Shown: positions 1,995 through 15,912, numbered from the stretch's first letter. The stretch: DNA of 15,912 nt from Octopus sinensis (GCF_006345805.1 NW_021825346.1:1-15912), one strand, 5' to 3'. Notes: generated from the letters alone by a model not told the origin. Program-made: numbers and translations.

Positions 1995-2080
1995 CTTACA
2001 AGTAACAAAGTTATCTAATAAACTCTTCATTGTTCTCAAAATTATTGGAAACCAAGACATTGTATTTCAACAGAAATATG
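1995..2080 (+). CDS. Putative internal exon (phase 2 to 1) of the PLAT-like repeat gene: xLQVTKLSNKLFIVLKIIGNQDIVFQQKY
   Basis: Acceptor aacatcag|C at 1993-94 and strong donor G|gtaag at 2081. The phase-1 G joins AA at 2258 to give GAA in frame. LQVTKLS resembles IVMTRLL at the start of exon 5555. The acceptor is only moderate. Confidence 0.55.
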
Positions 2081-2257
2081 GTAAGAAAAAGGTTAATGTT
2101 AAGAAAATCAGTCATTTCTTGTTGAGGAATAACTCAGATCTCAAGATGTCAAGTAATTCACCACTTTTTACAGCACATTTCTTTTTTTTTATATAAGGAA
2201 TCACAACTGCTATACCATCCTTTATATTACTTTTTTAAAATTTTCTTTCTTTTCTAG

Positions 2258-2490
2258 AATCTGTGTGGAAAATAGAATTAACCTCACAATCCAAACTAAC
2301 AGGAAATATAGAAGAAATAAAAATATTTTATGCAGTGTTTGGCAGTGAAACAAAATCATCACAAGGTCTAACTTTAAAGAAATTAGCTGATCTCCCCACA
2401 TTCTCTGCTTTTACCAATATTGGAAATATAAGCATTGGTGAGGTTGAAATAGCCTTTGAAAACAACAGCAAATCTATTGACTTATCCAAA
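2258..2490 (+). CDS. Exon A1 (phase 1 to 0), N-terminal part of PLAT/LH2-like module 1: ESVWKIELTSQSKLTGNIEEIKIFYAVFGSETKSSQGLTLKKLADLPTFSAFTNIGNISIGEVEIAFENNSKSIDLSK
   Basis: Long polypyrimidine tract ttttctttcttttctag|, 233-nt open frame, donor AAA|gtgag. Alternating hydrophobic beta-strand pattern. FG and IGEVEIAFEN match the PLAT pattern as I recall it. Confidence 0.8.
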
Positions 2491-3182
2491 GTGAGAATTT
2501 TTACCTTCTTGAATTCTGTAATTGCATTTTTTTTTTTATTTTAATTCTTTGCTTATTTCTTGTAACTATTGCTATTATTGATGTTGTTATTAAAGTCCTG
2601 ATCAGCCTTGACAAGAGAACCTAAGATCTTTATTCAGTCAGTCTTTCTTTTTCTGAGATAATATGGTGTTATAGTGTGGATCCTCATCCACTTGTACATT
2701 GTTTATTGGCACTGTAATGTTCTTGTTGCCACTGTTATGTTGTGGCAGTTTTCCGCATCTTATTATCTCTGACTTGTCTCTCATGCTATCATTGAGAGGT
2801 CCACAAGACAATGACTTTGAAACATCTATCCTGACAGTAACCCAAACTTGTATATATCACGTAACTGACACTGACTCCAACTGAGAACTCGTACAATGAC
2901 CCTACTACTACTGAACACCTACAGCAATGGACTGTCTTACTTTATGGTGGCTGGATCATACCACTTTGTCCTGTGGAAAGGGGGTGTACCATTTTCTTGT
3001 GTTAGTATAAACCTATATTCATTTATTTTTATGAATACTTTTTTAATATGTTCAAAGTGTTGCTCCGCTAACTCTTTATCAAAATATCATTGAAATAAGG
3101 GAAATATTAGAATGAAAGTAGAAATAAGATATATAAAAAATATTGTAGTTTACAATATCTTTATATATCTTTCCTTCTCAAA

Positions 3183-3569
3183 TGAACCCTAAACACCTTC
3201 GAGTGATGGGACCAGCAAACCAGTTATTTTTGCCACTCTTTAGTACTAGACACTGCTAGAGATAGCAGTAGCTCATTTCTACTCTCAATATATATATATA
3301 TATATATAAATTCAAGCAACACAGAGTTGTTGATTTTTCAAGAAGCTAAAAATCTAGGTTTAAAATCTCTCTAAGAGATGATTGCTGTTGCTTTTTAGCT
3401 TGTTGCAAAATCAGCAACTGTGCACTGCTTGAATTTATATATATATTGCAAGCAGAATCAAGCTACTGCCATCACTAGCAGATGAACTGTCCAGTACTGA
3501 AGAGAGGCAGAAATAGCCCGAAACGATACTGGTATGCTAGTCCCATCACTAGAAGGTGGTAAGGGTTCA
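3183..3569. mobile_element. Foldback/MITE-like element with ~170-bp imperfect inverted arms
   Basis: 3183-3352 pairs with 3393-3569 (tgaaccct...agggttca; agtgatggga/tcccatcact; both arms carry a (TA)n followed by aattcaagca). Spacer about 40 nt. No clear target-site duplication. Confidence 0.8.
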
Positions 3570-3789
3570 CCCTCCTGCTTGCAATATATTTGATGCAGCT
3601 GTGCATAGTTAACCAGCTAGAAGTGATATCCTCATGTGGCAAAAAAATCGCAGTGAAGTCTGATCCAATGGAACAGCCATGTTGAAGTGACTACAAAGAT
3701 TACTATGTGTGTGTGTGTGGTGTGTGTGTGTGGTGTGCATGCATATATGTGTGTGTATGCGTGTATTTATATTTATACACGTAAATGTC

Positions 3790-5115
3790 AAATGATGAAA
3801 TGAGTGCTCAACACCACTTTGGTGGATATATAATTCTTTTATTTGTGAATTATGTCTAATTGGTTTCATGTTAAGAAAAGTAGGAAAATATCTTAATTTT
3901 TCAAGCTGATCACATGGATAAAGGCGTTCACCTCCATTTTGGGAAACAGTCTCACTTTGTTCATGGGACTTCTCTTAAATTCGCCTAAATAAAGCAATGA
4001 ATCAATGACTCCAAAGGACATTACTTTCGAGTGGCTTCTTTCAAGTGTTTGTCTTCCTTGAATTTGTCTTTTGGGTAAATTTTTTTGTGGTTAATTATTT
4101 TGCATTATTCGTTTTTGTTCTGAGCATGATGTTTTTCTACTTGTATGTTGAGTTAGTTCGTCATTGGGGCATATTTCCTTTTTTGTGAAGTTTGTGTGCT
4201 ATGTGTGTTCATGTTTAGAAAAGGGGCTCTCCTGGTGGGGTTACTTTCGTTTCTACAGGGTCTTCTTTGAAGTATTTGTGTGTAAAATATTGCTTGTGTA
4301 TGCAGGGAGAGAAGGATTCATCCCCAATGTTTAAGATGTTATCTGTTGATTGTATAATGTTTAATTTTTCAGTAATGCAGAGTTCATATTTGATACCCTG
4401 TCCTCTGTATTTTTTTGACTTTGGTAATAATTTTCCATTCTATCTGGGATATATTCTATCTGTGATCCATATCATATTTGATAGGGATGTCGCATGTTTT
4501 TTGTTTTCATTTCTGAATGATGCAAAATGTTGTGTATACCTTTCCTTGAATGAGTTGCCTGTCATTCGGATATATGTCTTTGCTATTCCGTTGGGGTCCA
4601 TCATCTTGGCTTTGTATATGGGTTCTTTCTTGAGACAGTTGTTGTTTTGAGAGCAGCAGTTTGAGGATCCGAAGTTGCATTGTCTTTCTGGGGTGTTTCT
4701 GGTGTGTTTATGTTTATTGTGATTAAGTATTGTTAACCCTATATTGGGGCAGCAGCTATAGCTAACTTTAACAGTGTTGCTGTTGAAGATCTTGAGGTAT
4801 TTGTGTAAATGTGGAAAGTGATTGTCTATAAATTTTATGAATTCCCTAACTATGTTAGTAGCTACGTTCATGCTATAAGGTGGCTTGAACCAGAAGGTTT
4901 TCCTCTGTCTGTATCTTCTTGGTCTGTTTATATTTGGTTCAATGTAGTGTATACTGTTTTTGAAGTTGGACTTTTATAATGCAGCATTATGATATGAAGC
5001 AGCTTTTTCAAAAGTGTCTTTGTCAACAGATAAATTGGAGATCCACTTACTAACGTTGTTAACTATCGATTTAATTACTGCTGGTGGGTGTTTGGAACAT
5101 ATGTCTGTGTACAAG
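3790..5115 (-). mobile_element. Penelope-like retroelement (probably Naiad clade), 3' part: RT thumb, linker, GIY-YIG endonuclease, 3' UTR; decayed
   Basis: Minus strand reads YTDICSKHPPAVIK...WFKPPYSMNVATNI...KIFNSNTVKVSYSC...CNFGSSNCCSQNNNCL...IYKA...TYIRMT..FKERY..H...IEWKI...ELCITEK...LN...CIH. It has stops and frameshifts. The left boundary is approximate. Confidence 0.9.
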
Positions 5116-5300
5116 GCTTATGAACACAAGAAAGTCATTACTCTTTCATGATAATTCCTACTGGGTAAAAAGGAACGGAGACAAGCTATTTCATGTGACA
5201 ATGAGGAGCTATGACAGTACAGAGATAGCTGACCTTGTAGGCTTTTATATCCTAGATGCCCTTAAAAAAGAAATAAAAGAAGCTAACATTGGTTTATACA
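5116..5300 (+). mobile_element. Inverted RT-core fragment of the same Penelope-like family
   Basis: RKSLLFHDNSYWVKRNGDKLFHVTMRSYDSTEIADLVGFYIL...NIGLY matches the PLE RT pattern RKSLLF..FDVTMGSYDGAE.CELVG..GLYRDD and breaks just before RDD. Confidence 0.88.
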
Positions 5301-5302
5301 AG

Positions 5303-5419
5303 TTATATGAGTCTTGGATGAATGATATAAATGCATCATTTAATGTCATACAGAATTACACACACACACACTAAATGACATATTTTCTGAATTTATATTT
5401 CAGACAAAAATTGGCTGTT
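5303..5419 (+). repeat. Direct duplicate of the intron end, acceptor and start of exon A2 (partner about 9075-9295); pseudo-exon
   Basis: 5371-5419 vs 9247-9295: 46/49 identical. 5319-5342 vs 9092-9115: 23/24 identical. Both copies contain a (CA)n tract. Confidence 0.9.
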
Positions 5420-5554
5420 AGAATGGGTGAAAAATATTGATCATAACACCACTCATAGAGGCAACAACTGCCCTTCTATCAGTGTAGACATTTGTGTTAA
5501 TTTAAATATATAATAAAACTAATCAGCTAACAATTTTCTTCTATAATTTTTCAG

Positions 5555-5648
5555 ATTGTCATGACAAGATTACTTACTGGTGAAGAATATGGTTGTGCTA
5601 ACATACACAAGACAAACTCACCTGAATATTCTTGTAAACTCCTGCACA
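5555..5648 (+). CDS. Exon B1 (phase 0 to 1), C-terminal part of module 1: IVMTRLLTGEEYGCANIHKTNSPEYSCKLLH
   Basis: Acceptor ttttcttctataatttttcag| and donor A|gtaag. Phases fit both neighbours. TGEEY plus a Cys pair resembles the end of a PLAT domain. Not in the ORF track. Confidence 0.75.
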
Positions 5649-6239
5649 GTAAGATTACATTTAACAACTAAATCAACCACCTTTAGTCTCTCTAATTGGT
5701 ACAGCTATTAAAAGGGAGCGAATCATTTTGTAATAATTCAAAGTAGAGTTAGAAATTTGAAATTGAAATTAGGGAAACTCAAGGAAAATATGCATAGAAT
5801 TCACATATTGTTTTGGGTACTTGATACAAATTTCTTAAAATTTCATGTCATTGATAATCATGAGTAGCACTATTTTATTCCTTTGATAAATAATCAGTAT
5901 GGCATGAGATCACATAAAGAACTTGTTCTGTGTGATCTTGTGCTAGTTTCTGTGTAATCAATGAAACGAATGAAGAAATAAAAGGTATCTCTAGTAAGTC
6001 CCTTAATGAATTAAAGCTTCAGATGAGTCGAGAATCTCTCTAGTATTAGGGGTTAATTGAAAGTGCTTATAAATCTGTGGATTACATCTCTACTGTAAAA
6101 CAGAAAAACAAGTAATGAATGGTTAATCTTACAAGTTCACAGGTATATGTCTTAAATTACTGAATAGGTCTTAGAGTGTGTGTATATATATATATATATA
6201 AACTGAGGTTGCAAGTGCTGGTGGTAAACTTTGTGAAAT

Positions 6240-7758
6240 TTGAAAGCATGAACCGATTTCATTACGCAATATTTTAATAAGGAAAAGCAATAGAAAACTC
6301 CAGCTAGGCAACAAGTATTTACTCACTATCAACTTTTATTTCCTGTCTTATAAGTGTTCAATGTGGCCACCACCTGCAGCATGGGCAACATCAATGCGAT
6401 AACAGAATTCCTCCCAGATGTGTATCAGCATATCATGATCCACTGAGTTGATAGTGTTGTTATTCTATGTTTATGATTATCGAAGTTAGTGGGTAGTGGT
6501 TGAATTTTCTAAGTTTTGAATGGCTGCCACAGAGGCACTGTAGTCACGTTGTTCTTCTGGCAACTTTCAGTTGTTTCTTTACACTCAGAATGGTGAGTCC
6601 TCAGCAAAAGGTGCTCTGTGTTCTTGAGTTCACAAAAACAAATTCGGTTGTCAGGGTGCAGTGTGCTTTGTGAAGGTGATTCGACATTAATCTGCCCTGT
6701 CCTAAGAACATTCGACGGTGGTTTCAACAATTGCAAGACAGTGGGTGTCTGTGTAAAAGGAAAAAGTCCAGGACAGCCACGAGTTTCGGAGAAGCAAGTG
6801 GCAAGAATCCATGCAGCGTTTAAGGGGTGCCCGCAGAAGTCCAAAAATCGAGCTAGCTGTGAGCTTGTGATCCCTCAATCCACTCTCTGTTGTGTGCTAA
6901 GATGTCTACATTTGAAACCATACAGACTATGCCTAGTTCAGGCACTTACCAGTGAAAAGAGGAAGCAGATGGAATTTTGCAAATCAATACTGGAGATGAT
7001 GGAAGTTGAAACCTTCATTTCATGTTTAATTTGTAGTGATAAAGCAACTTTTCACTTGAATTGCACAGTCATTCGTCACAATGTGTGTATTTGGGGACCA
7101 GAGCACCCACATGAAACAGTTGAGGACAAAAGAGATTCCCCTAAGGTAAACGTCTTCTGTGCTGTGTCTCAGGAGAAGGTTCATGGTCCCTTTTTCTTTG
7201 AAGGAAACACCGTTACAGGACAAACCTATCCCAATATGCTCCAAAACTGGCCCTTCACTTCACTACAAGCAGATTTGTATAACTTCATTTTTTAACAAGA
7301 TGGAGTTCTGCCCCATTGGTACCTGATGGTTCGAGCTTTTTTAAATGAAAAAGTGCTCCAGTGATGGATTGGTCAGAAAGGGGCCCAAGACTTTGCTCTT
7401 TGTGCTTGGCCTTTGAGATCCCCAAACCTCACCATGTGTGATTTTTTTCCGTGTGGGAATATATAAAAGATTACGTTTATGTTCCACCACTACCCACTAA
7501 CCTCGATGACCGTAAACATCGAATAACAACAGTGATCAACTCAGTGGATCGCGATATGCTGATATGCATCCGGTAGGAATTCTCTTATTGCATTGATGTT
7601 GCCCATGCTGCAGGTGGTGGCCACATTGAACACTTGTAAGACAGGAAATAAAGGTTGATTGTGAGTGAATATTTGTGACATAGCTGTAGTTTTTCTATTG
7701 CTTTTCTTTATTAAAATATTGCATAATGAAATCAGTTCATCCTTTTTGAATAACCCTG
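6240..7758 (+). mobile_element. Tc1/mariner DNA transposon (rosa/DD41D/Visitor-like) with long inverted repeats
   Basis: Right end ...ttttgaataaccctg|TA followed by (TA)n. 6248-6501 is the inverted copy of 7485-7742, about 30 differences in about 255 nt by manual count. The left terminal ~12 nt no longer match. Confidence 0.9.
6590..7639 (+). pseudogene. Decayed DDD transposase with an N-terminal HTH (DUF4817-like)
   Basis: MVSPQQKVLCVLEF...KSPGQPRVSE...SDKATFHLN...RDSPKVNVFCAVS...GPFFF...F*QDG..PHW...WPLRSPNLTMCDFF...GGHIEHL*. Several premature stops (e.g. 7293, 7362) and two frameshifts (about 6765 and 7450). Confidence 0.92.
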
Positions 7759-7896
7759 TATATATATATATATATATTATATATATATATATTTAAATAA
7801 TGAGGGAGATAAATTAATATTAATTTTAATATCAATTTAAAACCAGTAGTCTAGCATGCAAAAAATCTGAGAAATCAGAGAAAATTCTGATATATT

Positions 7897-8051
7897 TGTA
7901 TATTGGCAGGGCAAGACTGCTAGGTAGTCGGCCGTATGCTACAAATAGATCATCAACGATCAAACTACAAAGAAAGTTCTCTGTAGTTTGATCGTTGACT
8001 ATCTATTTCTAGCATACGGCCGACTACCTAGCAGTCTTGCCCTGCCAATAT

Positions 8052-8054
<3 letters not shown>
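7897..8054. mobile_element. 158-bp near-perfect palindrome (MITE-like) in a TA-rich context
   Basis: tatattggcagggcaagactgctaggtagtcggccgtatgcta... is mirrored by ...tagcatacggccgactacctagcagtcttgccctgccaatata. About 78-bp arms, 4 mismatches, 2-nt centre. Confidence 0.92.
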
Positions 8055-8096
<42 letters not shown>

Positions 8097-8381
8097 CAAT
8101 AATAGAGACTAAGACATTTAAAAAAATTTTTATTAGTGGGGCCAGCATATAAAAAAGAAGACTGATTCAGGTGAAATTATTTGTATAATTATAATAAGGG
8201 CTTAAAAAACATTTTCTATCCTATTTGCTGAGAAATAGACTCCCAATTGTCTTGCCACTAAAAATAGTCGCAAACACATGTTGAATTTGATGCAACAAGC
8301 CAACTGAAATCATCAATAAAATAGATGGCCCTGGATTAGCTAATTTCTACCCAATGGCTTTTCTGTCTTCGGCAGGACATT

Positions 8382-8786
8382 CATATTTCATTTCATTTAC
8401 TTGTTTCAGTCATTTGACTGTGGCCATGCTGGAGCACCGCCTTTAGTCGAGCAAATCGACCCCGGGACTTATTCTTTGTAAGCCCAGTACTTATTCTATC
8501 AGTCTCTTTTGCCGAACCGCTAAGTGACGGGGACGTAAGCACACCAGCATCGGTTGTCAAGCAATGCTAGGGGGACAATCACAGATACACACACACACAC
8601 ATATATATATATATACATATATACAACAGACTTCTTTCAGTTTCCGTCTACCAAATCCACTCACAAGGCATTGGTCAGCCCGGGGCTGTAGCAGAAGACA
8701 CTTACCCAAGATGCCACGCAGTGGGACTGAACCCGGAACAATGTGGCTGGTTAGCAAGCTACTTACCACACAGCCACTCCTGCGCC
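8382..8786 (-). mobile_element. Full-length tRNA-derived SINE resembling an abundant octopus family
   Basis: Minus strand begins ggcgcaggagTGGCTGTGTGG (A box), then GGGTTCAGTCCC (B box), an internal (TA)/(TG) tract and a (TGAAA)-like tail. The family assignment is from recollection. Confidence 0.85.
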
Positions 8787-9164
8787 TATATCTCATTTAT
8801 TTTCTATATATGTCCTGGTGAAGACAGAAAAGCAATTAGGCAGATCTAGAAATTAGCTTATCTAGGGCAGGCTGTTTTATTAATAATTTCAGTTGGCTTC
8901 TTGCGTCGAATTCAAGACATGTTTTATATTTAAGAGATGCAGAATTATTTACATTATTTACATTATTTATATTATATACATCTCTACTTCTTACCGCACT
9001 GCCACATCATTACTTTTTGCCATACTACCAAATCATTATATCACTACTTCCACAAGTCCTAAATGATGTGACAAATTATGTGTGCCTGAAGTGAATGATA
9101 TAAATGCACCATTTAGTAAGTGTCTTAAAGATTTATATATATTTATTTATGTGTGTGTATGCAC

Positions 9165-9190
9165 ACACATATACACACACACCACACACA

Positions 9191-9247
<57 letters not shown>
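9165..9247. repeat. (CA)n microsatellite about 30 nt upstream of the exon A2 acceptor
   Basis: Direct reading. It is the source of the spurious TH-repeat ORF. Confidence 0.97.
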
Positions 9248-9251
<4 letters not shown>

Positions 9252-9279
9252 AGACATATTTTCTGAATTTATATTTCAG

Positions 9280-9506
9280 GCAAAAATTGGCTATTGAAAG
9301 TTATTTCTCCTGAAGAACACAAACGAAATTTCACTGTAGAAATAATTCAAGACAAGTTATCTTCTTCCTCTAGAAAATTCATATGGAATCACTTCTCCGT
9401 GTATGGAGATAGTTATATTAAGCATTTCAATCTGAAAACATATGAAGAGGGTGAAATCACAAGTCTAAAACTCCATTTCTTCCATCAAATTCTAAAGATC
9501 AGTGAA
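9280..9506 (+). CDS. Exon A2 (phase 1 to 0), N-terminal part of module 2: SKNWLLKVISPEEHKRNFTVEIIQDKLSSSSRKFIWNHFSVYGDSYIKHFNLKTYEEGEITSLKLHFFHQILKISE
   Basis: Acceptor atttatatttcag|GC, 227-nt open frame, donor GAA|gtaaaa. W at position 4 as in A1. GEITSLKLHF resembles the lipase-PLAT GELxxLKLxW strand. Confidence 0.82.
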
Positions 9507-9899
9507 GTAAAATTATATTTTTAATCTATTGAAAAATATCTAATGACAATAGAGGGGCAGAGTGCAATTTTTAGGGGAGTGAATTTGATACTTCAAAATG
9601 TCTGGGTCCAGACTCTTAGTGGAACCAACTTTACTGCTACTTCTTTTCTAAAACCTCCAATGATGGACAGCCCTAAACCTGTCCCTCACTACACACAATC
9701 TACCCTATCATCTTTCATCCCCTTTTTTCTTCATCCTATCACTCATCCTTTGTTTCTACCCTGTTCCCTGCCTTATTCCCTCCCTCTTCCCCTCCTACTT
9801 ACCATCCCCCATCCCTCTGCCTTGATTCATCTCCAGCTCTCTCATTTCTTCTTCTGTTATAGGGGGCTGGTTTAGAGCCTTAACCTTGCAAATTACAAG

Positions 9900-10200
9900 G
9901 CAATCACCACTAGTGTTGATGTCAGAACAAAAAGTAACCCCTGTAAAGAGGTTGGCATTAGGAAGGGTGTCCAAGCCAAAAAAACCATGCCAAAGTAGAC
10001 AATGGTGCATGACAGCCCTCCAATTCGTCTGATCCTGTCAAACTGTCTAACCCTGCCAGCTTGGAAAATGAATATTAAATAATGATAATGATGGAAATGG
10101 TGATGAAGATAGTGGTGGGGTGATACTACTGCTGCTGCTGCTGCTGAAGGTGGTGATGGTAGTGATAATAATTGTGATGATGGTGACAGTGATGATGAAT
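9900..10200 (+). mobile_element. Degenerate SINE 3' half (GGTTGGCATTAGGAAGGG domain plus RTE-like tail) running into ATG/GGT/CTG low-complexity repeats
   Basis: 9950-9977 ggttggcattaggaagggtgtccaagcc and the tail ctaaccctgccagcttggaaaatgaatattaaa(tga)n match the reverse complement of 15084-15241. Confidence 0.7.
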
Positions 10201-10737
10201 ATCCTTGTGCCAATGTAATGAACTACCCCCGCCACACACAAAGTGTCGCCCTACCACCTGAGCAACTGAAAATTCACCTCCAATATCATTTAATTCTTAC
10301 TGGTTTATTCCACTTCACCATATATAGGTACCCCAAATGGTACATCTTATGGCTGTAAGCAGTGGAAGCAGTATGCAATTGTCGACTGTTCTACTGTACC
10401 TCAGTACTAAATCCACATCTACTCTTTTAATTAAAAAGAAAAATGTTAATAACCCATTGATAGCTACATCTGGTTAGGAGACAAGTCAATCGATAGAATC
10501 TATTTATCAAACTTTCGTAATATAAATATCATTGGTTGTTTGATTGATTGAGTGATTGACTGATTTGGAAGTGGGTGGGATGGAAAGTATTTAAAGTGTC
10601 TCCCCCATGAAACGTTGACAGAAATAGAGAATGTGAGGACAAACAACATCAACACCTTGACAAGAAACTGAAGCAAATCATAATCAGTGTTCAATCAGGT
10701 GAGTTATATTAATGATATTTCAAATCTATCATTTCAG

Positions 10738-10837
10738 ATAAGTTTGATCGACAATTACTCAGAGTATAAGTTCAGAACAAATGGTGAAAGCAAAATTCTG
10801 AATAATTTGGTGAAAGCATTTTCTCAAATAACAAAAG
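10738..10837 (+). CDS. Exon B2 (phase 0 to 1), C-terminal part of module 2: ISLIDNYSEYKFRTNGESKILNNLVKAFSQITK
   Basis: Acceptor tctatcatttcag| and donor G|gtatat, 100 nt open. EY.F aligns with EEYG of B1. Not in the ORF track. Confidence 0.78.
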
Positions 10838-11499
10838 GTATATGGTGTATGTGAAATTGTCGTATTTAAATACTGTTTTTTTTAAATGTTAGACATCAAC
10901 ATCAAGTATAATCAAACACACTCATACACATAGACACATTCATACACATACACATACTCGCATTAATACACACTCATACAGAGAGATACAGATGCATACA
11001 TATGCCCATACTTTCATCACATGTACACCAACATAAACCGGTTGGGTGGATAATGTAGTGAACAGTCAACCCAGGAGTATTTTCCAGAGGTGATTTTGTC
11101 AATGTCCAGGAATCAAATCTTCTGGACTTTTCAGTGGAGAACAATATGGAATGTTAAACATTATGGTTTGAGGTGATAGAATATTTAAAAGTCATAGTAG
11201 TGAGAAGTGTGGAGATGTCATTATTGGGAGAAAAAAAGGAGTTCTAGAACAAACTACCATGTTTAATTAAATGGAGAGATTGGTAAAAAAGCCAAACTCA
11301 TTATCTTCAATTTGGTTTTCAAGTCTCTCCTCATCTAAAGTCATAGATGTTGAATAATGATGTAAAGCAGGGGCAGACCAAAGGGAGTGCCTGAGAAGCA
11401 CTCAAGAAAAGATGTGCACCCTTCTAAATAATGTTATTATGCCCTTTTCTCCTGGAATAATATTCCCTTCTGACCTTGTGCCCTCCTTTTGAAAAATTT

Positions 11500-11785
11500 A
11501 ACCACTCCTGACTAAAAGAGTATGGCTGCAAATACAAGAGGCCAAAACGAAGTTCCTCCAAAGGATCTCTGGAAAAACTTAACAAAATGTGTAGTTCAGA
11601 GATTATGGAGTCTCTCCAGGTCAAGTCACTACTTTTTTACATTGAGAGGTCATGGCTCTGGTATGAAGGACATGAATGACATAGAACGACATAAGAAAGA
11701 CTCAAAGGACAGATACTTCAAGCCAAGCCATCCTGCAGGAGATCTAGCAGTAGACCAAAATTGAGATGACTGGATTATATCCCTT
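11500..11785 (+). mobile_element. RTE-clade LINE 3' ORF fragment, decayed
   Basis: TKRVWLQIQEAKTKFLQRISGKT*..SSEIMESLQVKSLLFYIERSWLWYEGH...QILQAKP...RPKLR.LDYI matches the RTE C-terminal pattern QAAEM.FLRR..G...RSS.IRE.L.VEPLL..IERSQLRW.GH...RP..RW.DY. Confidence 0.8.
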
Positions 11786-11854
11786 ATTATCTATTCAAGA
11801 AACGGTGTGTATGTGTGTGTAAATACACACACACACACACATTTTTGCATATTG

Positions 11855-11965
11855 TTAACATGAAGGACATCCAGCCATAGAAGATCTGCTTCAACAAATT
11901 CCATCTGCTCCATGCATGAATGGAAATATGGACGCCAAAATAATGATGCTGATGATGATGTTAGC
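11855..11965 (+). mobile_element. Truncated SINE 3' tail with (ATG)n end
   Basis: gaaggacatccagccatagaa...ccatgcatgaatggaaatatggacgccaaaa(tga)n, the same tail type as 9950-10090 and 15084-15241. Confidence 0.7.
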
Positions 11966-12177
11966 TGTCTGTTCATCATTTGATGTTGTCATCAGCTAGT
12001 TCTTGGGTGCAAGAATTTCTCCCAGACTGAATGGTTCCTCCAAATTGATGGCATCGATGACTGAGATAGGCAATCCTCACATGAAGCAGAATTGGACTTC
12101 TCCGATTAATAATAATGTTTGTGTTTCAGAGATATTTTTGTCAATCTTAAATTAAAATTTCTTTCTTTATTTTTTAG

Positions 12178-12219
12178 AGAAAATACATAATGATGAAACG
12201 AGTCCCTCCATGGAAACAG
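12178..12219 (+). CDS. 42-nt symmetric (phase 1-1) linker exon: EKIHNDETSPSMET
   Basis: Very strong acceptor tttctttctttattttttag| and donor CAG|gtaat. Open in the frame required by its neighbours. Confidence 0.62.
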
Positions 12220-12277
12220 GTAATGATATTTTATCATGTATCATCTCATAATTTTTGTTTATCAAGTTTTCATTTTG

Positions 12278-12392
12278 CAACCACACTGTTTCAAGTTCAG
12301 TCCCACTGCATAACACCTAGAGTAAGTGTCATTTACTATCGCCCTGGGCCAAAAAAAAACCTACTGTCTTGTGAGTGTATTAGGTTAGAGAC
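12278..12392 (+). mobile_element. Degenerate 5' fragment of the same SINE family as 8382-8786, in the opposite orientation
   Basis: aaccacactgtttcaagttcagtcccactgcataacacctagagtaagtgtc...cttgtgagtg aligns with the reverse complement of 8655-8750. Confidence 0.7.
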
Positions 12393-13457
12393 TTTGTAAT
12401 TATTCTCTGACTATCATTGGAATGGTTTCCACTTAATGTCAAATATTGAAAATCTTTGTCAGGTCATATCATGGTTTGATAGCTATGGAAACTGGCTAAT
12501 GCCTCTTAAATATGACTTTATGACTGGGGAGGGTCTTTTCTCAAAACTCAACTCTGTATTTGAGTGAAAGTTTAATAACTACACCAAGAATATCTAAACG
12601 AGTGTAACCGTTTATTATCACATTAGTGTTCAAATATTCTAACTTTGTTTTAATTATGATAATTCTGAAAATAATGAAAATTTCAGTAGAATAGATTTAT
12701 CCTTATTAAGCTGGTGTTTGACAGTTGAATAACTTCACCAAGAATTCTTGTATGAGGACAGGGAGTTAAGTGAGGTTAACAAACTTAATGAAGTGACTCA
12801 ACCACGCCAAAATATTTTTTATCAATTAACTCTTAATATCATATTGAAAAATGCCCAAGTCAAAAGCCCTGTCTTATGATTCTGTGAAAGAACAAAAGTG
12901 AATGATAGATGAGATAGAGTTTTCTCGCTTGCATTAGATATTTCCTCACTTCCTTCCATATGAATGTAAACAAGGTTTGTTTATTTCTTTATGACACAGG
13001 AAGTAAAGAATTAAAAATTACACTCTTTATAGAAAGAAAAATCATTAGTATTAATGATAATCAATGTCAAAAGGAATGAACACTACTTCAACATTCAAAC
13101 TATGTAAAAAAATTTAATTGTACCATGCAGCAGAGAGGATATGAGATCCAGTAAGAAAAGATATCACTATACTTCACTGAAGTAGTCTAATAAGACCAAA
13201 CCATATCTACACTTATTATTCTTACTTACCAATGACGAGACTCGTTTCCTACAGTATGTCCCCATTCGACATTTTTATTAATTTTTATCCTGGAATCGAC
13301 ACTTGATTTTGATGGTAATTGTCGCTAAGGCTAATTAATTTTCTTTTTAATTACATTAGTAATTTTGAAAGATGATAATATTTTACATTAAGTATATTAG
13401 CTGCTACTTAAGTATATATAAAATATTATTTGATTATCTTATTGTTTTCTTCTTTAG

Positions 13458-13525
13458 ATATTAGCCTCCTTGCAGTCATGATATTATTCTTGCTCAGCAT
13501 CAACATCATCCTCAGTATCAAGTAA
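13458..13525 (+). CDS. Probable terminal coding exon with hydrophobic anchor: DISLLAVMILFLLSINIILSIK-stop
   Basis: Acceptor ttattgttttcttctttag|AT, phase 1. Encodes 20 mostly hydrophobic residues, then AAG TAA (stop 13523-13525). Alternative donors (A|gtatc, AA|gtaac) cannot be excluded. Confidence 0.7.
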
Positions 13526-15057: not shown

Positions 15058-15082
15058 TGTATGTATGTATGTATATATATAT

Positions 15083-15331
15083 ATCATCATCATCATCATC
15101 ATCATCATCGTTTAACGTCCGTTTTCCGCGCTAGCACGGGTTGGACGGTTTCGACCGGGGTCTGGGGAGCTCGGGACTGCCCCAGGCTCCAGTCTAGTCT
15201 GGCAGTGTTTCTACAGCTGGATGCCCTTCCTAACGCCAACCACTCCGCGAGTGTAGTGGGTGTTTTTTACGTGCCACCTGCACAGGTGCCAGAGGGGTCT
15301 GGCATCGGCCACGTTCGGATGGTGCTTTTTA
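15083..15331 (-). mobile_element. Well-preserved SINE 3' half (GGTTGGCGTTAGGAAGGGCATCC domain, possibly Meta-type, with RTE-like tail and (ATG)n)
   Basis: (CAT)n at 15083-15109, then gtttaacgtccgttttcc..., ggatgcccttcctaacgccaacc at 15219-15241, and an internal ggtg.tttttacgtgccacc repeat. CpGs are retained, suggesting a young copy. Confidence 0.8.
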
Positions 15332-15912
15332 TGGGGGGGTGCAGAAATATAGGGGAGCACAGTGGGAGGGGTGGTTCAGAGGACAGGTACTAGTCAAGTA
15401 GAACGTAGGATATCGAGAGAGGGGTAATGCATGGTGAAATAGCGTATTGAAGAGGGGGGTTCAAAGAGTAGACACCTATAATGGTGGTGGGGGTGCAGAA
15501 ATATAGGGGAGCAGCGTATTGAAGAGGGGGGTTCAAAGAGTAGACACTATAATGGTGGTGGGGGTGCAGAAATATAGGGGAGCACCAGTGGGAGGGGTGG
15601 GCACCAGTGGGAGGGGTGGTTCAGAGGACAGGTTCTAGGCAAGTAGAACGTAGGATATCGAGAGAGGGGTAATGCATGGTGAAATAGCGTATTGAAGAGG
15701 GGGGTTCAAAGAGTAGACACCTATAATGGTGGTGGGGGGGTGCAGAAATATAGGGGAGCACCAGTGGGAGGGGTGAGCACCAGTGGGAGGGGTGGTCCAG
15801 AGGACAGGTTCTAGGCAAGTAGAACGTAGGATATCGAGAGAGGGGTAATGCATGGTGAAATAGCGTATTGAAGAGGGGGTTCAAAGAGTAGGACACCTAT
15901 AATGGTGGTGGG
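15331..15912. repeat. ~176-bp G/A-rich tandem repeat with an internal 19-bp duplication, running off the right edge
   Basis: gtagaacgtaggatatcgagaga recurs at 15398, 15643 and 15819 (spacings 245 and 176). The first interval includes a ~70-nt partial duplication. gcaccagtgggaggggtg is doubled within units. Confidence 0.95.

Follow-up and report, generated by a model that had tools for sequence, protein, structure and literature searches.

The stretch of Octopus sinensis DNA studied here (the window, 15,912 nucleotides, nt) is an entire unplaced contig of 15.9 kb, which carries the middle and the end of one gene. The reading that best accounts for it, with a probability of about 0.72, is that six consecutive exons (E2 to E7) belong to a multigene family of type I membrane glycoproteins that is restricted to octopods and has PLAT-type modules. 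A preliminary description of this DNA had joined seven GT-AG exons into a single frame. This model was rebuilt exactly, each exon having an AG acceptor behind a pyrimidine tract and a GT donor, with compatible phases and with the spliced frame open for 282 amino acids (aa), up to a TAA codon at 13523-13525. Exons E2 to E7 of the model are supported, whereas the first one (E1) proved to be spurious. The exons are as follows, where M3 and M4 are modules 3 and 4 of the encoded protein:

E1, 1995-2080, plus strand: first exon of the preliminary description, rejected.
E2, 2258-2490, plus strand: first exon of module 3 (M3a, SVWKIELT...DLSK), with a phase-1 intron on its 5' side and a phase-0 intron on its 3' side; not in the NCBI model.
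E3, 5555-5648, plus strand: second exon of module 3 (M3b, IVMTRLLTGEEYGC...EYSCKLLH), with the pair Cys120/Cys133; present in the database protein P0001 from the Met of E3.
E4, 9280-9506, plus strand: first exon of module 4 (M4a, KNWLLKVISPEEH...KISE); P0001 is identical across both junctions.
E5, 10738-10837, plus strand: second exon of module 4 (M4b, ISLIDNYSEYKF...SQITK), supported by P0001 and by the paralogue locus L002.
E6, 12178-12219, plus strand: short stalk exon (EKIHNDETSPSMET), present in P0001.
E7, 13458-13525, plus strand: transmembrane exon (DISLLAVMILFLLSINIILSI).

The best database match of the spliced protein was P0001, a 173-aa entry named by NCBI "uncharacterized protein LOC115227221, partial", with 100% identity. 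This protein spans from the Met in E3 to the residues ..LSI in E7, and the junctions E3-E4, E4-E5, E5-E6 and E6-E7 are identical in both sequences. The reading frame had been presented as hidden, which does not hold, as five of the seven exons (E3 to E7) were already in the RefSeq model LOC115227221. The accompanying remark that the mechanical list of open reading frames catches parts of only three exons was correct, the list containing just E2, E4 and E5.

The paralogues back the same exons and extend this support to E2. When eight of them were searched against the window by tblastn, E2, E3, E4 and E5 were found, with E-values down to 5e-31 for E2, and the E2-E3 junction (..SK|IVMTR..) agrees with the paralogues and with the exon boundaries of LOC115217915. 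At the locus of this paralogue (L001, encoding P0007), E2, E3, E6 and E7 have their collinear counterparts in exons 6-9, flanking introns included, with 72-83% nucleotide identity, the acceptors and donors being at the same positions. E2 shows 84.5% nucleotide identity to exon 6 of LOC115217915, with no indels and with conserved splice sites, E3 shows 88% to its exon 7, and E6 is homologous to its exon 8, with both splice sites kept and one in-frame indel of 6 nt. For module 4, E4 has 79.5% nucleotide identity to the M4a exon of LOC118768046 (P0003, at the 41-kb locus L002), and E5 also matches a module-4 exon of L002. E2 to E7 are real exons, and E2 is a valid exon to add to LOC115227221.

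The gene is cut at both ends because the contig terminates in satellite or tandem repeats on either side. The 5' end consists of a 13-nt satellite (GTGATATTTATAT) at positions 4-1661, with 127.6 tandem copies, 94% match and a GC fraction of 0.16, and the 3' end of a 176-nt tandem repeat at 15513-15912, with a related 71-nt period from 15441 (96-98% match). The 5' satellite probably caused the assembly break that removed the upstream exons. As a gain for annotation, E2 is added to LOC115227221 and its partial model is explained by a satellite-cut contig.

The spliced protein matches the eight paralogues with E-values of 1e-78 to 5e-36 and identities of 48-75%, and by this similarity it belongs to an octopod orphan family that includes LOC115217915, LOC115217968, LOC106873229 and their relatives. 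A family profile built from nine members was searched against 1.84 billion representative proteins, and 27 representatives were found and no more. The ten clusters that were looked up contained only proteins from Octopus sinensis, O. vulgaris, O. bimaculoides or Argonauta hians, all of them labelled "uncharacterized" or "hypothetical". The suggestion that the protein could be lineage-specific agrees with these results, and the family is uncharacterized. In the family alignment, the modules start with W-x-I/V-x-L/V and carry a block ..EEYGC..YSC.., the invariant positions being W, ELT, K, T, L, EEYGC, N, C and K.

In full-length members of the family, the signal peptide is followed by four modules (M1 to M4, about 90-115 aa each), and these by a short stalk, a single transmembrane helix and a cytoplasmic tail that measures 50-190 aa. 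Two exons, a long one and a short one, encode every module, whose boundaries are phase-1 introns, while the stalk, the transmembrane segment and the tail have separate exons; the exon maps of P0007 (L001) and P0003 (L002) agree with E2 to E7 both in position and in phase. This arrangement of phases allows entire modules to be added or removed without disturbing the frame, and the module number does vary, with P0007-P0009 being devoid of M4, and P0010 and P0033 showing an extra block. The contig carries M3, M4, the stalk and the transmembrane exon, and in this copy the signal peptide, M1, M2 and the tail exons would lie beyond the end satellites. Either a lipase domain or more repeats had been considered for the upstream region; the full-length paralogues carry a signal peptide, M1 and M2 there, that is, more modules, and no lipase domain (PF00151) or other Pfam domain was detected in them.

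The topology features of the family are those of an extracellular array. The paralogues have an N-terminal signal peptide and a single strongly hydrophobic segment, modules 1-3 end in Cys pairs, and the ectodomains of the family contain 135 sequons, compared with 81 in shuffled sequences. The window protein itself has four of them (NIS85, NNS97, NFT154 and NYS219), just as had been listed. The proposal of an extracellular, membrane-anchored tandem array is supported by these signal peptides, by the excess of sequons and by the single transmembrane helix. On the other side of the membrane, most tails show a motif N-P/S-x-E/D-I/V-Y-x-N, and several of them also have a distal Y-E-E/D-L-like motif.

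In order to assign a fold to the modules, AlphaFold2 models of the window protein and of P0003 were built from the family alignment, which is shallow (32-38 related sequences). The window protein gave a mean predicted local distance difference test score (pLDDT) of 79.5, with the modules mostly at 77-91, and P0003 gave 79.7; both models are all-beta, with 8-9 strands per module. When both were compared with the PDB by Foldseek, the matches with probabilities of about 0.97-1.0 were PLAT/LH2 domains only, namely those of LPL, pancreatic lipase, PLRP1/2, 5-LOX, 8R-LOX, 15-LOX-2 and Rab6IP1, mostly with a root-mean-square deviation (rmsd) of about 4-6 Å over 110-137 columns. The best ones were the lipoprotein and pancreatic lipases, with probability 1.0 and rmsd of 3.6-5 Å over 117-137 columns for the window model. 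The predicted structures thus show what defines a PLAT domain structurally, an eight-strand beta-sandwich, about 110-120 aa long, that can be superposed on PLAT domains of solved structure. A PLAT-like fold is the best-supported reading of the modules and a probable one, with at least one of them predicted to be an 8-9-stranded PLAT/LH2-type beta-sandwich, most similar to the domain at the C-terminus of lipoprotein and pancreatic lipases.

A number of results weigh against this assignment. The E-values given by Foldseek lie between 8e-4 and 0.1, which is modest, the models stem from the shallow alignments indicated above, and the matches refer to whole models and not to single modules, being judged by probability, E-value and rmsd. 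At the sequence level, the Pfam PLAT family (PF01477) gave no match at E<=10 with the window protein, its two modules or 38 family members, and a profile search of the PDB sequences gave no match at E<=10 either. Whether the query was a raw open segment, the spliced protein, a single module or one of the 38 members, Pfam returned only chance matches to transmembrane segments. Comparison of M1-M4 by hhalign with four lipase PLAT sequences from the PDB gave probabilities of at most 1.5%, and no significant mutual similarity was found by hhalign between one module and another. With a hidden Markov model (HMM) of lipase PLAT domains, the real modules reached at most 4.0 bits, compared with up to 8.7 bits for shuffled ones, this profile being a narrow one made of mammalian lipases only; widening it with the C-terminal domain of human pancreatic lipase (100% identical to 1lpa_B) retrieved only 20 near-identical mammalian fragments.

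These negative results are what would be expected if the modules were a lineage-specific beta-sandwich not descended from PLAT/LH2, in which case the Foldseek matches would reflect convergent or generic geometry, or a bias of AlphaFold towards known folds. Such an origin could also explain that no test gave any sequence or profile signal to PLAT, that the Foldseek E-values are only in the range of 1e-3 to 1e-1, that the alignments beneath the models are shallow, and that the tandem C2 domains of E-Syt2 were matched as well, with probabilities of 0.77-0.87. However, all the matches with probability around 1.0 in the two models are PLAT domains and come from four unrelated protein families, whereas the non-PLAT matches had low probabilities and rmsd values of 14-30 Å. 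In their size, in their first strand (W-x-I/V-x-V/L) and in the Cys pair of their last hairpin, the modules are furthermore similar to lipase PLAT domains, by eye and not significantly. An unrelated sandwich is in our opinion the less likely option, although one with a real share of the probability. The motif resemblances on which a lipase-type PLAT had first been proposed are visible by eye and give weak alignments in the expected register, with no statistical support, so that of that proposal the predicted beta-sandwiches and the exclusive high-probability matches to PLAT stand, and the sequence motifs do not. In the same way, of the structure and profile searches that had been suggested, AlphaFold and Foldseek point to PLAT/LH2 with 8-9 strands, and hhalign, HMM and Pfam give no PLAT signal.

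The preliminary description had also concluded that the protein ends in a C-terminal membrane anchor. A hydrophobic segment is indeed found at residues 260-282, with a helix at 256-281 in the AlphaFold2 model, consistent with a transmembrane segment, but it is most likely not C-terminal. The TAA at 13523-13525 overlaps a phase-2 donor (ATC AA|GTAAC, with the exon end at 13521) that aligns base for base with the donor, also of phase 2, that is used in LOC115217915 (GTC AG|GTAAA), and the TAA terminates the frame only if the donor at 13521 stays unused. As the stop overlaps a conserved donor and the NCBI model, flagged as partial, stops at ..LSI, E7 is therefore most likely an ordinary transmembrane exon, and the cytoplasmic tail after it is most likely encoded outside the contig. 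In LOC115217915 the cytoplasmic-tail exon lies 4.9 kb downstream of the transmembrane exon, a distance beyond the reach of this contig, where the DNA 3' of E7 comprises 2.4 kb and is repeat-rich.

A protein that actually ends at the TAA at 13523, as a tail-less form anchored by its membrane segment or by glycosylphosphatidylinositol (GPI) and without a signalling tail, appears rather unlikely to us. The in-frame TAA directly after ..LSIK would fit such a form, and so would the small residues (S, D) of the stalk before the C-terminal hydrophobic stretch, as occurs in GPI signals. It would also be consistent with the result of a tblastn search with the tails of eight paralogues, in which no cytoplasmic-tail exon was detected in the remaining part of the contig (13526-15912), a result that also counts against the proposed architecture, and with the read-through isoforms annotated elsewhere in the octopod family. 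What argues for a transmembrane segment followed by a tail is the position of the stop over a donor that coincides exactly in place and phase with that of LOC115217915, together with the partial flag of the NCBI model at ..LSI.

Regarding these isoforms, membrane and soluble forms are annotated for LOC115217968, and the window contains sequences that could produce similar endings. Read-through of the E5 donor (10838-10854) would yield ..ITKGIWCM-stop, and the annotated ends of the paralogues P0003 and P0006 are GIWCF and GIWCI. Likewise, read-through of the E2 donor (2491-2544) would give ..SKVRIFTFLNSVIAFFFLF-stop, the annotated end of P0034 being VRIFTFLNSVFAFLF. Several annotated members of the family thus terminate by read-through of a module donor, which reflects either soluble isoforms that really exist or an artefact that recurs in the annotation. 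In the 10 kb that follow the last module exon of LOC118768046 (P0003), at L002 30787-40787, exons for a stalk, a transmembrane segment or a tail were not detected, and compared with L002 the window has about 1.75 kb of additional sequence (10861-12608), in which the stalk exon E6 is located. It may be that some paralogues exist only in secreted form.

The conservation of the exons was compared with that of the introns. With respect to LOC115217915, the identity of E2 and E3 (84.5% and 88%) is similar to that of the introns (81-92%), which would point to weak constraint or to a copy that is young or decaying, and this counts against a functional gene, as does the absence of E2 from the NCBI model. 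We consider improbable that the locus is a decaying or partial duplicate, i.e., a pseudogene fragment that remains open only through its recent duplication and makes no functional protein: it would account for exons conserved no better than introns, for the absence of the 5' exons and the tail exon from the contig, for a partial NCBI model that begins at an internal Met in E3 and for the lack of a near-identical O. vulgaris orthologue among the database matches, but all six exons are open with every splice site intact, no indels are found in the 327 nt of E2 plus E3 while about 1,030 nt of flanking intron hold 41 gap positions, the ratio of nonsynonymous to synonymous substitution (dN/dS) of E2 plus E3 against LOC115217915 is 0.43, below 1, the satellites at the contig ends explain the missing exons as an assembly break, and NCBI predicts a gene at the locus.

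Considering then E2 to E7 as part of a family of membrane glycoproteins with PLAT-type modules, its architecture can be compared with known systems. PLAT/LH2 is known as a single accessory domain of lipases and lipoxygenases, as a cytoplasmic domain of polycystins and as cytosolic repeats in LOXHD1. The closest likeness is to the C-terminal PLAT domain of lipases (LPL, pancreatic lipase, PLRP1/2), which is the best structural match, has a similar size, is extracellular or secreted, and shares a Cys pair in the last hairpin (Cys120 and Cys133 in M3 of the octopus protein). In lipases this domain binds a partner or a lipid surface (colipase, GPIHBP1). The octopod proteins differ from them in that they have no alpha/beta-hydrolase domain, in that their modules are in tandem and tethered by a transmembrane segment, and in the lack of significant sequence or profile similarity. 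LOXHD1, with 15 PLAT domains, is similarly made almost entirely of tandem and mutually divergent PLAT-type modules, but it is a cytosolic, membrane-associated protein without signal peptide or transmembrane helix, whereas in the octopod proteins a signal peptide and a transmembrane helix are present, together with sequons and Cys pairs of the disulfide type; no LOXHD1-like protein was present among the 27 matches of the family profile. The polycystin-1, PKD1-like and PKDREJ proteins are also PLAT-containing membrane proteins, and to our knowledge the polycystins are the only ones. Their PLAT domain is single and cytoplasmic, located after the first of 11 transmembrane helices, whereas the octopod modules follow a signal peptide, precede a single transmembrane helix and would face outwards.

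In the way it would work, the family is reminiscent of clustered immune-type receptor families whose ectodomains are tandem beta-sandwiches, such as the vertebrate KIR and LILR. Among the shared traits are the signal peptide at the start, the tandem sandwich modules between phase-1 introns, the transmembrane helix and the tyrosine motifs of the tail; membrane and soluble isoforms occur in both, as do clustering of the genes, rapid divergence and a variable number of modules. By contrast, the fold predicted for the octopod modules is PLAT-like and not that of immunoglobulins, and the tail motifs (YxN and YEEL-like) do not have the canonical spacing of immunoreceptor tyrosine-based inhibitory or activation motifs (ITIM/ITAM). 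Several genes of the family are found on one O. sinensis chromosome (CM016870.1), where a second member, oppositely oriented, follows LOC115217915 at a distance of 6 kb (L001 55623-59344, minus strand), with an M2a exon 71% identical at 55925-55719. The family is thus locally clustered on CM016870.1, and this clustering, the variation in module number, the isoforms and the weak constraint resemble by analogy what is seen in recognition-receptor families.

According to these features, a glycosylated chain of PLAT-like modules would be displayed at the cell surface through one helix, or alternatively released as a soluble isoform through donor read-through. The chain could bind a lipid-like, membrane or protein ligand, and in the members with a tail the engagement of the ligand might be signalled through tyrosine phosphorylation, pYxN being the consensus for the SH2 domain of Grb2. 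More speculatively, and with little confidence, octopods could have evolved a new class of cell-surface receptors, in which an extracellular chain of PLAT fold, perhaps derived from the C-terminal domain of a secreted lipase, was joined to a tail for tyrosine phosphorylation, the genes having diversified in clusters and giving both membrane and soluble isoforms. Such a class would be a non-immunoglobulin counterpart of immune-type or contact-chemosensory receptors, possibly tuned to lipids or hydrophobic surface molecules.

The gene itself was already in RefSeq, so what is new here is the fold assignment and the architecture. We know of no described architecture in which a glycosylated tandem array of PLAT-like modules, led by a signal peptide, is mounted on the chassis of a single-pass receptor with tyrosine motifs, and a literature search (PLAT and octopus, tandem extracellular PLAT, octopus novel gene families and six LOC identifiers) returned nothing on the octopod family or on such an architecture. 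If the fold assignment is true, it would offer a first way into the structure and function of an orphan family that is confined to octopods, nameless and domain-less, and would show that lineage-specific receptor families can be built from a non-immunoglobulin fold.

Regarding the rejected exon E1 (1995-2080), it is a chance open AG..GT segment in a dispersed repeat, within the intron upstream of E2. In the 596 nt that precede E2 there are 19 alternative phase-compatible open AG..GT segments, and at least one appears in 90% of shuffled sequences. The E1 peptide shows no similarity to the family exon expected at this place, M2b (VKLKNMxTSKIYSC...YHECSLxN), and tblastn with the eight paralogues detected no M2b exon anywhere in the window. 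The region 1954-2094, which holds E1, is a repeat of about 140 nt with an inverted copy at 12595-12735, in the E6-E7 intron, and a further copy at L002 30795-30950 (match 30801-30942), just past the last exon of LOC118768046. In addition, the window region 2063-2257, including the E1 donor, is homologous to an intron of LOC115217915 (L001), and the pLDDT of residues 1-25 was below 50. A frame-1 read-through at 2081-2152 (KYGKKK..ISHFLLRNNS) was also considered as a degenerate relic of M2b and was discarded, 2063-2257 being homologous to the paralogue intron and 1954-2094 a copy of the repeat.

Some additional observations concern the introns and the repeats of the contig. A stretch of about 70 nt that comprises a (CA)n tract, a polypyrimidine tract, the acceptor of E4 and the 16 nt with which this exon begins (TTTCAG|GCAAAAATTGGCT, coding for KNW) is found at 9224-9295 and duplicated at 5348-5417, 155 nt upstream of E3. 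The same stretch is found at L001 37899-37968, in the same place of LOC115217915, a gene without module 4. Ectopic conversion may have left this duplicate as a trace, or it may be a decoy for the acceptor. Copies of the dispersed repeat at 15074-15333 are numerous at both paralogue loci (L001 and L002). Another interspersed repeat, of about 400 bp, at 8393-8790, has more than 12 copies on both strands of L002 (78-94% identity) and several in L001, and looks like an abundant octopus element of the short interspersed type (SINE-like); Rfam and tRNA scans of the window, this repeat included, gave no match. Finally, two intronic open frames, one at 6597-7292 (plus strand, 232 aa) that by eye is like a mariner/Tc1-type transposase, and one at 4440-4871 (minus strand, 143 aa) that by eye is like a GIY-YIG/Penelope-like domain, had no Pfam match at E<=10 and are probably decayed transposable elements.

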